This document shows positions 27,909 through 29,856 of a stretch of 64,000 nt of DNA, in pieces. The position numbers were made by a program, and so were the translations under genes. The stretch is taken from assembly GCA_009103225.1 (NCBI GenBank), contig RHPI01003156.1, forward strand, positions 1,174,159 to 1,238,158. The letters are read 5' to 3'. The number at the start of each line of letters is the position of its first letter. Position 1 is the stretch's first letter. The notes below the pieces were generated by a model that saw nothing but the letters and a program-made list of their open reading frames with translations, ran no database searches and was not told the origin of the DNA. This DNA comes from Chlorokybus atmophyticus (lineage: Eukaryota; Plantae; Mesostigma and Chlorokybus algae).

Positions 27909-28103
27909 GTACGGCGTGCGCATGAACAATAGTACAACGCCGTACACTTTACTACGAATGTATTGCCTTTCAATTCCCGTTGTACAAGTTGTTCTATGCA
28001 GAGCATTGTCGGAGCCTGTAAACGTTGCCACGACGTTACTGAGACATTGCGGCGGAGTGCATGCTCGTACAAGATTTGTACCAAACACGTACGACTACTG
28101 TAC
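27909..28103 (+). promoter_or_regulatory. Proximal GTAC cluster (8 copies), candidate copper-response elements (SBP-box CRR1/SPL7 sites) of the Spondin gene
   Basis: GTAC at 27909, 27932, 27942, 27982, 28067, 28078, 28089, 28100, which is 64-258 bp upstream of the ATG at 28167. Fewer than 1 is expected by chance. Confidence 0.65.
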
Positions 28104-28166
28104 GGCCTGGGAGTATTCCCGCCGCCAACTTCACATTGCTGGCCAGTTTTGCGCTATTCTGCAAAC

Positions 28167-29856
28167 ATGGCGGCGGCGGCAGTAAGGACCCTGACCTGCA
28201 CCTTCCTGCTGGCATGCTTGGCTGCCACCCTCCTTCACTCCACGCTTGCTCACTGCCCAGGCATGCATTGTGGCTGGTCATGCACAGTGGCCACTTGTGT
28301 GCATGTGTACTCTCTCTCTCTCTCTCTCTCTCTCTCTCTCTCTCTCTCTCTCTCTCTCTCTCTCTCTCTCTCTCTCTCTCTCTCTCTCTCTCTCTCTCTC
28401 TCTCTCTCTCTCTCTCTCTCTCTCTCTCTCTCTCTCTCTCTCTCTCTCTCTCTCTCTCTCTCTCTCTCTCTCTCTCTCTCTCTCTCTCTCTCTCTCTCTC
28501 TCTCTCTCTCTCTCTCTCTCTCTCTCTCTCTCTCTCTCTCTCTCTCTCTCTCTCTCTCTCTCTCTCTCGCTCGCTCTCTCTCGCTCTCTCGCTCTCTCGC
28601 TCGCTCTCTCTCACACACACACACACACACACACACATACGCGCGCATGCGTGCTTGCGTGTCTGATGCGAGTGTCTGTGTGCAGAGGATGGCATCTACG
28701 AGTTCACCTTCGTGGGCCAATGGACCGAAACCAACCAGCCAGGGCTGTACCCGTCCGGCGCTGGCTTCAGCCCCCTCGTCATGGCCACCCACAGCAGGTA
28801 CATGCAGCGCTGCGCTGTCTCAGCTCACTCATGCATGCACTTGCAAAGTGCCACACGCTTGTAGCATCACTTGACCGTCGCTTCAAACAGCAATATCAGC
28901 CTTTTCGTTGAGGGCGCACCCATAAGCATCCCCGGCCTTGCGGTGAGTGATACAGGGAGGAGGGAGAGATCTCTTCAAACTGCTGTCGTGCCAGCTGGAC
29001 TTGTGATCCACATCACACGCACGATGCTAACAACCGTAACCTCCCACAGGCGTTCCTGTCGTCTGCCAGTGGCAACGACTCCGCCACGTTGGTGGCGACT
29101 GCGCAGGCCCAGTACAACATCACCGTCGACGGCCTGGACGTCTCAGGTGAGATAGGGAGACTATGTATGTGCATGCTTTGTCCTCTGAGGGGATGAACTC
29201 CTGCTAATTGTGGAATTGATGACCAGGTCCACTGGGTCCCAACAGCACGTACACCGTGCAGCTCCCCGCCACCAACACCTTCAGGAACTTCTCCGCTATC
29301 GCCAAGGTTTTGCCTTCATCCGACTGGTACGTTCAGCCTATAACCCCGTTAGTCTGGACAGATATCTGTCCAGTCACTGACTCTGTCACTCTACTCTGTA
29401 GGTTTGTTGGTGTGTCCAACTTTGACCTCTGCGGTCACCATCACTGGGAGGAGAATGGCACCATCCCGCTGACTGTCTATGATGCTGGCGTGAAGACCAG
29501 CACTCTGGCTTTTAATGACTCCGGCCTGGCGTCCAGCACACCTGAGGTAATGCATTCCACAGTCACTGCACCTGTGCGTGCGCTTGCATGCGCTCATATG
29601 CGTGGGATGAGATGTATGTCATGCATGTGCCTTGTGGTGTGGTATGTGTCTAACACTGTGATTGCAGGCCGTGAGTGTGCTGCCCATCACCTTCAACGTG
29701 GCTCCAGCGTACATCTCCTTCCGATTGGTGTATGTGGCGCCAGCAGCGCCAGAAGAAGCCCCTGCACCCGAGTCCAATGGCGCCTTTGCACCCATTGCGG
29801 CCTCTGCTTACATGCTCGCCACACTCCTGGCAACGCTTGTATTGGCGATGTTCTAA
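28167..29856 (+). CDS. Secreted, GPI-anchored Spondin_N (F-spondin/mindin FS) domain protein
   Basis: Exons 28167-28260, 28686-28797, 28891-28942, 29050-29146, 29227-29326, 29402-29546, 29668-29856 splice in frame. Signal peptide MAAAAVRTLTCTFLLACLAATLLHSTLA. Spondin motifs: YEFTFVGQWT..YP..FSPLVMATHS, PSSDWFVGV..DLC..W..L.VYDAG. AP-rich spacer followed by a hydrophobic C-terminal tail (SNGAFAPIAASAYMLATLLATLVLAMF*). Confidence 0.85.
28310..28637 (+). repeat. ~300-bp (CT)n microsatellite followed by (CA)n in Spondin intron 1
   Basis: Pure CT run from 28310 to ~28568, degenerate CT/CGCT to ~28612, then CA repeats. Confidence 0.97.

Follow-up and report, generated by a model that had tools for sequence, protein, structure and literature searches.

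The gene Chrsp23S03690 of the alga Chlorokybus atmophyticus, which we extend here at its 5' end, is best explained, at a probability of about 0.6, as encoding a GPI-anchored, N-glycosylated surface protein with an FS (Spondin_N) domain, transcribed under SBP-type control. The solid result of the analysis is a corrected model of this gene, which lies within a stretch of 64,000 nucleotides that we call the window. A first-pass annotation of the window had listed features of the protein and of the DNA upstream of it, and all of these were recovered in place.

The gene consists of seven exons whose spliced coding sequence is open throughout (Table 1), and its only non-canonical splice junction is the GC donor at 28261. 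Exon 1 is covered by RNA contigs from four runs (X1-X4), all of which stop exactly at 28260; in 4/4 of these runs the contig end at that position joins AGGATGGCATC..., i.e. the sequence from 28686 onward, the continuation past 28260 reading AGGATGGCATCTACGAG in each of them and the longer reading of the junction, AGGATGGCATCTACGAGTTCACC..., likewise matching 28686 onward in all four. This comparison of RNA contigs with the 5' region covered 27600-28310. Given that the GC-AG intron is confirmed by the RNA contigs, the reading ...H24-S-T-L-A28-H29-C30-P31-E32-D-G-I-Y... is confirmed as well, and with it the frame of the N-terminal exon, for which a mature end reading STLA followed by HCP had been proposed from the genomic sequence. 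Two in-frame GT donors for the first intron, at 28270 and 28297, were rejected because they create a TAG with the acceptor at 28686, and phase-0 donors at 28287, 28299 and 28305, combined with other acceptors, were ruled out by the RNA contigs. Run X4 represents a diverged copy of the gene that shows 7 differences over 70 nt and begins its signal peptide differently; it is unchanged over 28227-28260, so that His29-Cys30-Pro31 is retained. Contig depths of the gene across the RNA runs range from 50 to 5688, and this wide spread between runs hints at conditional expression, contig depth being a poor measure of it.

The sole database protein retrieved with the read-through translation of exons 5-6 was the public model of the same gene (eukprot jgi/Chlat1 Chrsp23S03690, henceforth P0001), which has 199 aa and carries PF06468. 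It is identical to exons 3-7 and begins at Met64 within exon 2, so that it is short of exon 1, of the signal peptide and of the domain's initial 35 residues. Word-based homologue searches likewise returned the gene's own model only.

Table 1. Coordinates in the window of the Chrsp23S03690 gene, its parts and the upstream GTAC array
Feature	Position	Strand	Remarks
GTAC cores, eight (SBP-box/CuRE core)	27909-28103	.	cores at 27909, 27932, 27942, 27982, 28067, 28078, 28089, 28100
Seven-exon gene, spondin protein	28167-29856	+	spliced CDS open, 789 nt, 262 aa
Exon 1: start codon, predicted signal peptide M1-A28, His29, Cys30, Pro31, first base of Glu32	28167-28260	+	
His29 codon (exon 1)	28251-28253	+	
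Cys30 codon (exon 1)	28254-28256	+	
Intron 1, GC-AG	28261-28685	+	about 300 bp of (CT)n then (CA)n microsatellite inside
Exon 2: strand beta1 and start of FS domain, EDGIYEFTFVGQWTETNQPGLYPSGAGFSPLVMATHS	28686-28797	+	Spond_N profile 3-36, E 0.004, matched by the exon on its own
Exon 3: FS domain, sequon N70	28891-28942	+	identical to P0001
Exon 4: FS domain, sequons N95, N109	29050-29146	+	identical to P0001
Exon 5: FS domain, sequons N124, N139; LPSSDW, equivalent of PSPDW motif	29227-29326	+	identical to P0001
Exon 6: FVGVSNFDLCGHHHW; Cys162, His164-166, YDAGVK, sequons N170, N190	29402-29546	+	Spond_N profile 120-158, E 1.3e-6, matched by the exon on its own
Cys162 codon (exon 6)	29430-29432	+	
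His164-166 codons (exon 6)	29436-29444	+	CAC CAT CAC
Exon 7: last FS strand, stalk, omega region, tail, stop	29668-29856	+	
Stalk A224-E235 (exon 7)	29737-29772	+	
Candidate omega S236-N237-G238 (exon 7)	29773-29781	+	
Hydrophobic tail (exon 7)	29782-29853	+	

That the protein contains a Spondin_N domain, as the first reading of the sequence had it, is established by the match of P0001 to PF06468 (profile positions 33-172, E 8e-16). A profile built from 62 homologous domains, including that of P0001, found two PDB entries, mindin (3d34, E 1.8e-56) and F-spondin (3q13, E 1e-49), and no others. The closest relative is a 301-aa paralogue from the same genome, Chrsp17S02683 (P0004; E 1e-44 against the full domain), the AlphaFold model of which (pLDDT 78.8) superposes on mindin 3d34_A with a TM-score of 0.80 (E 3e-15); judging from this model of the paralogue, a C2-like beta-sandwich of eight strands is the likely fold. 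Other named relatives comprise sponge, coral, diatom and bacterial proteins. In an alignment of 133 rows, namely 132 homologous domains and the Chlorokybus protein, the Asp of the PSPDW motif is present in all except one (132/133). The YDAGVK segment is the counterpart of DAGTD, Lys taking the position of the final Asp, and the first two Asp of the Ca2+ site are kept; the column of the third Ca2+ ligand holds Asp or Glu in 120/133 rows, and Lys solely in the Chrsp23S03690 protein. The three-Asp Ca2+ site, formed by the PSPDW Asp and both Asp of DAGTD, is incomplete here, and with Lys in place of the third acidic ligand we regard the canonical site as degraded. Such a three-Asp site is a feature of F-spondin that the Pfam family does not require.

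In F-spondin and mindin a cysteine located before strand beta1, C(1), is bonded to C(4) of the DLC loop between beta6 and beta7 (PMC3117680). The equivalent residues, Cys30 and Cys162, are the sole cysteines of the predicted mature protein. Of the 132 homologous domains, 49 have both C(1) and C(4), 75 have neither and 8 have one without the other (Fisher 2e-27), which makes the two concordant in 124. This covariation, together with the presence of exactly two cysteines in the mature protein, supports a Cys30-Cys162 disulfide well, and the bond that had been assumed at the outset is borne out both by it and by the F-spondin structure (PMC3117680). In F-spondin another Cys stands four positions after C(4) and forms a disulfide with the residue directly following C(1) (PMC3117680); the equivalents of this second pair are His165/166 and Pro31 in the Chlorokybus protein. 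If the F-spondin C(2)-C(5) bond is taken as a guide, the HHH run of the DLCGHHHW loop, which is indeed present as residues 160-167, should lie against the H29-C30-P31 segment.

The histidines themselves have no counterpart among the homologues. It had been asked whether they co-occur elsewhere in the family, and this turned out not to be the case: neither P0004, which reads QSIP-C and ELCQNGFW at the two sites, nor any other of the 132 homologous domains combines an equivalent of His29 with a His run, a result that tells against the copper-capture proposal as originally made. More than one His within six residues after the DLC Cys is found in 0/132 domains, and 128 of them have none there; His before Cys1 occurs in two, at the predicted mature N-terminus in neither. 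A short-fragment search of other Chlorokybus strains with the HHH region found no orthologue. On these alignments His29 and His164-166 appear to be a lineage-specific and clearly derived addition, and the uniqueness of HHH among the 132 domains argues that the run is derived rather than a matter of background composition. The 262-aa protein has 6 His in total, 2 of which lie outside the cluster and the signal peptide, and an origin of both the HHH run and the predicted N-terminal His by pure chance is improbable. The surface-glycoprotein reading leaves these two features unexplained.

The remaining features of the protein point to the cell surface. His29-Cys30-Pro31 follows directly on ...S25-T26-L27-A28, and the A28/H29 site fits the -3/-1 rule (Thr, Ala), with a hydrophobic core of 15 residues before it; the signal peptide would thus most likely be removed after Ala28 of the 262-aa precursor. 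The seven N-x-S/T sequons noted earlier are all there, so that the single FS domain may carry up to seven N-glycans, and at the membrane-proximal 'bottom' of this domain Cys30-Cys162 would staple the beta6-beta7 loop to the N-terminus. The Ala/Pro stalk, APAAPEEAPAPE, with 12 residues (224-235), and the GPI-type tail are likewise present. By inspection, the tail runs from S236-N237-G238 through a spacer to MLATLLATLVLAMF at the C-terminus, with 24 mostly hydrophobic residues after the omega region and zero cytosolic residues, and the C-terminus of P0004 is similar, with PESN followed by a hydrophobic tail. The C-terminal signal would in all likelihood be swapped for a GPI anchor, leaving the mature protein at the plasma membrane's outer face or in the wall. 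Other members of the spondin family are likewise tethered, to judge from the tail of P0004 and the PEP-CTERM anchors of bacterial proteins. By analogy with animal FS domains, we read the domain as an extracellular binding module; this term is a generic one, since we know of no ligand for any non-animal FS domain.

The claim that eight GTAC cores lie just upstream of the gene also held, and the array is in promoter position. The last four cores are spaced by exactly 11 bp and have different flanks, CGTAC is found on one strand in 5/8, and the eight together form the densest GTAC cluster in the window: when the window's 237 sites were placed randomly, at least eight fell within 195 bp in 0.08% of trials (P about 0.0008). 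An origin of the array as a tandem repeat was rejected, as the cores are not copies of a repeat. The X2 transcript contig has its 5' end at 28152, which puts the array 50-245 bp upstream of it. The stretch 27340-28150 is contained fully in X1, is absent from X2 and was not found in X3, both X2 and X3 being runs that express the gene; the array hence lies upstream of the usual transcript 5' end in X2/X3. A long 5' UTR containing the array was considered in view of an unbroken X1 contig of about 27338-28260, which we read as DNA or read-through because X2 and X3 express the gene without 27340-28150. GTAC occurs only as isolated sites in the regions preceding the window's largest P5CS, GNAT and Pol I-like ORFs, which rejects such arrays as a universal promoter feature and indicates that the array is selective. 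Clusters of GGTACC/ATGGTAC are also seen at 25904-26413, in gene-poor DNA of the window. With a transcription start some 15 bp before the ATG, the eight cores would occupy the proximal 250 bp, four of them phased by one helical turn, and this is how a promoter under one or more SBP-box factors would be expected to look. The array is thus probably an SBP target. Given that GTAC is the core site for all SBP-box factors, beyond CRR1/SPL7 (PMC8430956), it is not diagnostic of copper control.

The first-pass annotation had gone further, reading the gene as one for copper capture. According to this reading, cleavage between A28 and H29 makes His29 the first residue of the mature protein, and its free amino group and imidazole would form, with one or more of His164-166, a histidine-brace-like Cu site held by Cys30-Cys162; the GPI-anchored protein would capture surface Cu and be induced through GTAC under Cu limitation in the manner of CRR1/SPL7, as a spondin-based protein analogous by convergence to fungal Bim1/X325. 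We consider this unlikely. Its structural premises (the exon, the disulfide and the position of the array) stood and the geometric premise of the site is reasonable, but the functional step found no direct support, and the homologues lack the His cluster. The H-C-P frame is confirmed by RNA, and the X4 copy shows no change at His29 or in the cleavage region, yet a shift of the predicted cleavage by one residue would destroy the brace. Equivalence to the F-spondin bond would place HHH by H29-C30-P31 (PMC3117680), and its uniqueness among the 132 domains marks the run as derived; however, both His features are missing from the paralogue and from every remote homologue, leaving zero conservation signal. 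The promoter position of the array and its 11-bp phasing would suit copper induction, whereas the same core serves all SBP factors (PMC8430956) and transcriptomes from ordinary cultures represent the gene well. A His at the N-terminus always chelates, with a preference for Cu(II), and Bim1 is likewise GPI-anchored (PMC10952591), but no sequence or fold relationship to the histidine-brace families (LPMO, X325/Bim1, CopC-like) was found; as only FS and C2 folds were matched, a Cu site, if real, would have to be convergent. Among the scanned larger ORFs flanking the gene none is copper-related. The more specific form of this idea, in which a convergent histidine-brace Cu(II) site on an F-spondin scaffold goes together with a GTAC copper-deficiency regulon that includes cytochrome c6, strikes us as quite unlikely.

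The His cluster might instead be functional in a role other than copper uptake, as a Zn/Ni or pH-sensing patch that tunes the binding of the FS domain to a wall or matrix ligand and perhaps replaces the degraded Ca2+ site, the GTAC array then reflecting developmental or other SBP-box control unrelated to Cu. The presence of Lys in a column that holds Asp/Glu in 120/133 rows would accord with such a replacement, and clustered surface histidines titrate near neutral pH and also bind Zn and Ni. SBP factors other than SPL7 use the same GTAC core (PMC8430956). Against this, the Ca2+ site occupies the top of the domain, whereas the disulfide and the His patch are found at its bottom (PMC3117680), so that the patch, being at the opposite end, is no spatial replacement for the site; moreover, P0004 has also lost the third ligand and gained no His. 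We therefore hold this reading, too, to be improbable. It might also be argued that the histidines have no function. They would then be neutral replacements peculiar to this lineage, located in an exposed loop and at a position before Cys1 that tolerates change, and the coincidence with the GTAC cores would be post-hoc pattern finding. In the alignment no sites vary more than those preceding Cys1 and following the DLC Cys, there is no conservation beyond Chrsp23S03690, and with many windows scanned some striking coincidences are to be expected. Nevertheless, we judge this very unlikely, in that HHH is encoded by mixed codons, which is no product of slippage, His is otherwise scarce in the protein, and His29 is kept in the diverged X4 transcript.

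In terms of its implications, the preferred reading as an anchored surface glycoprotein would mean that a streptophyte alga uses the animal-type FS domain in a heavily glycosylated, predicted GPI-anchored surface protein with at least two paralogues; to our knowledge, such an anchored architecture has not been described for spondins. If the Cu site were real, the protein would be a plant-lineage counterpart of fungal Bim1 in an early-diverging streptophyte alga, a new scaffold would join the short list of histidine-brace copper proteins, and the green lineage would gain a surface copper-capture step upstream of the COPT/CTR transporters. In that event, dense phased GTAC arrays would serve as a recognisable mark of the copper regulon of early streptophytes.

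Among known systems, the CuRE promoters of CRR1 in Chlamydomonas and SPL7 in Arabidopsis resemble the array described here in having several GTAC cores near the transcription start; they are targets of copper-response regulators, while the core itself is common to all SBP-box factors and a Cu response of the present promoter is putative. The likeness to Cryptococcus Bim1/Cbi1 and the LPMO-like X325 proteins (PMC10952591; PMC9258870) is one of analogy only: they are secreted, GPI-anchored beta-sandwich proteins with an N-terminal His, the anchor and this His being predicted ones in the Chlorokybus protein. They are related to the Chlorokybus protein neither in fold nor in sequence, a brace geometry, Cu binding and induction by Cu limitation are putative for the latter, and X325 adds an Asp ligand where it offers extra His. 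Bacterial spondin proteins, which often carry PEP-CTERM anchors, resemble it in having one FS domain that is fixed at the cell surface through a C-terminal sorting signal; many of them lack the Cys pair, and in contrast to the algal protein they have a prokaryotic anchor, no glycosylation sequons and no His cluster. The paralogue P0004 shares about 39% identity and the succession of signal peptide, FS domain, Pro-rich stalk, PESN and hydrophobic tail, and has lost the third acidic Ca2+ ligand too; it differs by its longer stalk, by NGF at the site of HHH, and by the tetrapeptide QSIP ahead of Cys1. With mindin/spondin-2 (3D34) and F-spondin/spondin-1 (3Q13) the Chlorokybus protein has in common PF06468, the PSPDW-like and DAGTD-like motifs and the invariant His, Trp and Asp, and with mindin the same C(1)-C(4) cysteine pair, in keeping with the superposition of the P0004 model (TM 0.80). 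Unlike these animal proteins, it is a single-domain protein of a streptophyte alga with a GPI-type anchor and without a thrombospondin or reelin-N domain, it has Lys as the third Ca2+ ligand and a predicted mature N-terminus one residue before C(1), and it carries, at the site of the second loop cysteine of F-spondin, the HHH run that follows C(4).

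The public Chlorokybus protein model Chrsp23S03690 (P0001, 199 aa) is truncated at its 5' end relative to the spondin gene, in the region 28167-28797, such that its first residue corresponds to Met64; it has no counterpart of exon 1 and includes only the second half of exon 2. Intron 1 of the gene is of the GC-AG type and is taken up by a (CT)n/(CA)n stretch of about 300 bp, and this combination is probably the cause of the truncation. Among the four RNA runs (X1-X4) whose contigs were compared with the gene, X4 contained a diverged copy of the spondin transcript, with 7 differences in the 70 nt at 28191-28260 and very high contig depth. 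The start of the signal peptide differs in this copy, while the cleavage region and the H-C-P tripeptide at the end of exon 1 are the same as in the window. This transcript probably comes from a different species or strain of Chlorokybus.

Upstream of the gene, a single uninterrupted contig from the RNA library X1 runs from about 27338 across the array of eight GTAC cores into exon 1, ending at 28260. Such a contig was found in X1 only, and X2 and X3 lack the stretch upstream of the gene. The X1 contig may stem from carried-over DNA, from read-through or from an infrequently used start farther upstream. The first GTAC core of the array is preceded, at a distance of about 30 bp, by a perfect inverted repeat of 15 nt (GAGTGTATCGCACCA / TGGTGCGATACACTC, with a 6-nt spacer) at 27846-27881. 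A further cluster of 12 GTAC sites, mainly GGTACC or ATGGTAC, occupies the 510 bp at 25904-26413 and is accompanied by short inverted and direct repeats (AGGTACCTGT...). It is situated in gene-poor, lower-GC DNA, flanked on one side by a Pol I-like gene and on the other by the spondin gene.

The two PALP genes in the window are in opposite orientation with about 6 kb between them. No inverted DNA repeat of at least 60 nt was found between them, and therefore they were not recently duplicated. Separately, GC content drops to 0.40 at 46001-48000, versus about 0.52 in the surrounding DNA. The neighbors in 1000-22300 were identified by Pfam on long ORFs, with the DNA polymerase-like gene being recognized by motifs instead.

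Further genes in the window
Gene	Position	Strand	Basis
Fused PHYLLO-type gene	~1600-8050	+	Pfam: chorismate-binding, TPP enzyme, MenC-like, alpha/beta hydrolase
P5CS	8865-11242	-	Pfam: amino-acid kinase, aldehyde dehydrogenase
GNAT acetyltransferase	14002-15099	+	Pfam
Family-A DNA polymerase-like gene	~16950-22300	+	Motifs in ORF translations, without Pfam scan
PALP (pyridoxal-phosphate enzyme) gene	36179-37045	+	
PALP (pyridoxal-phosphate enzyme) gene	42505-43634	-
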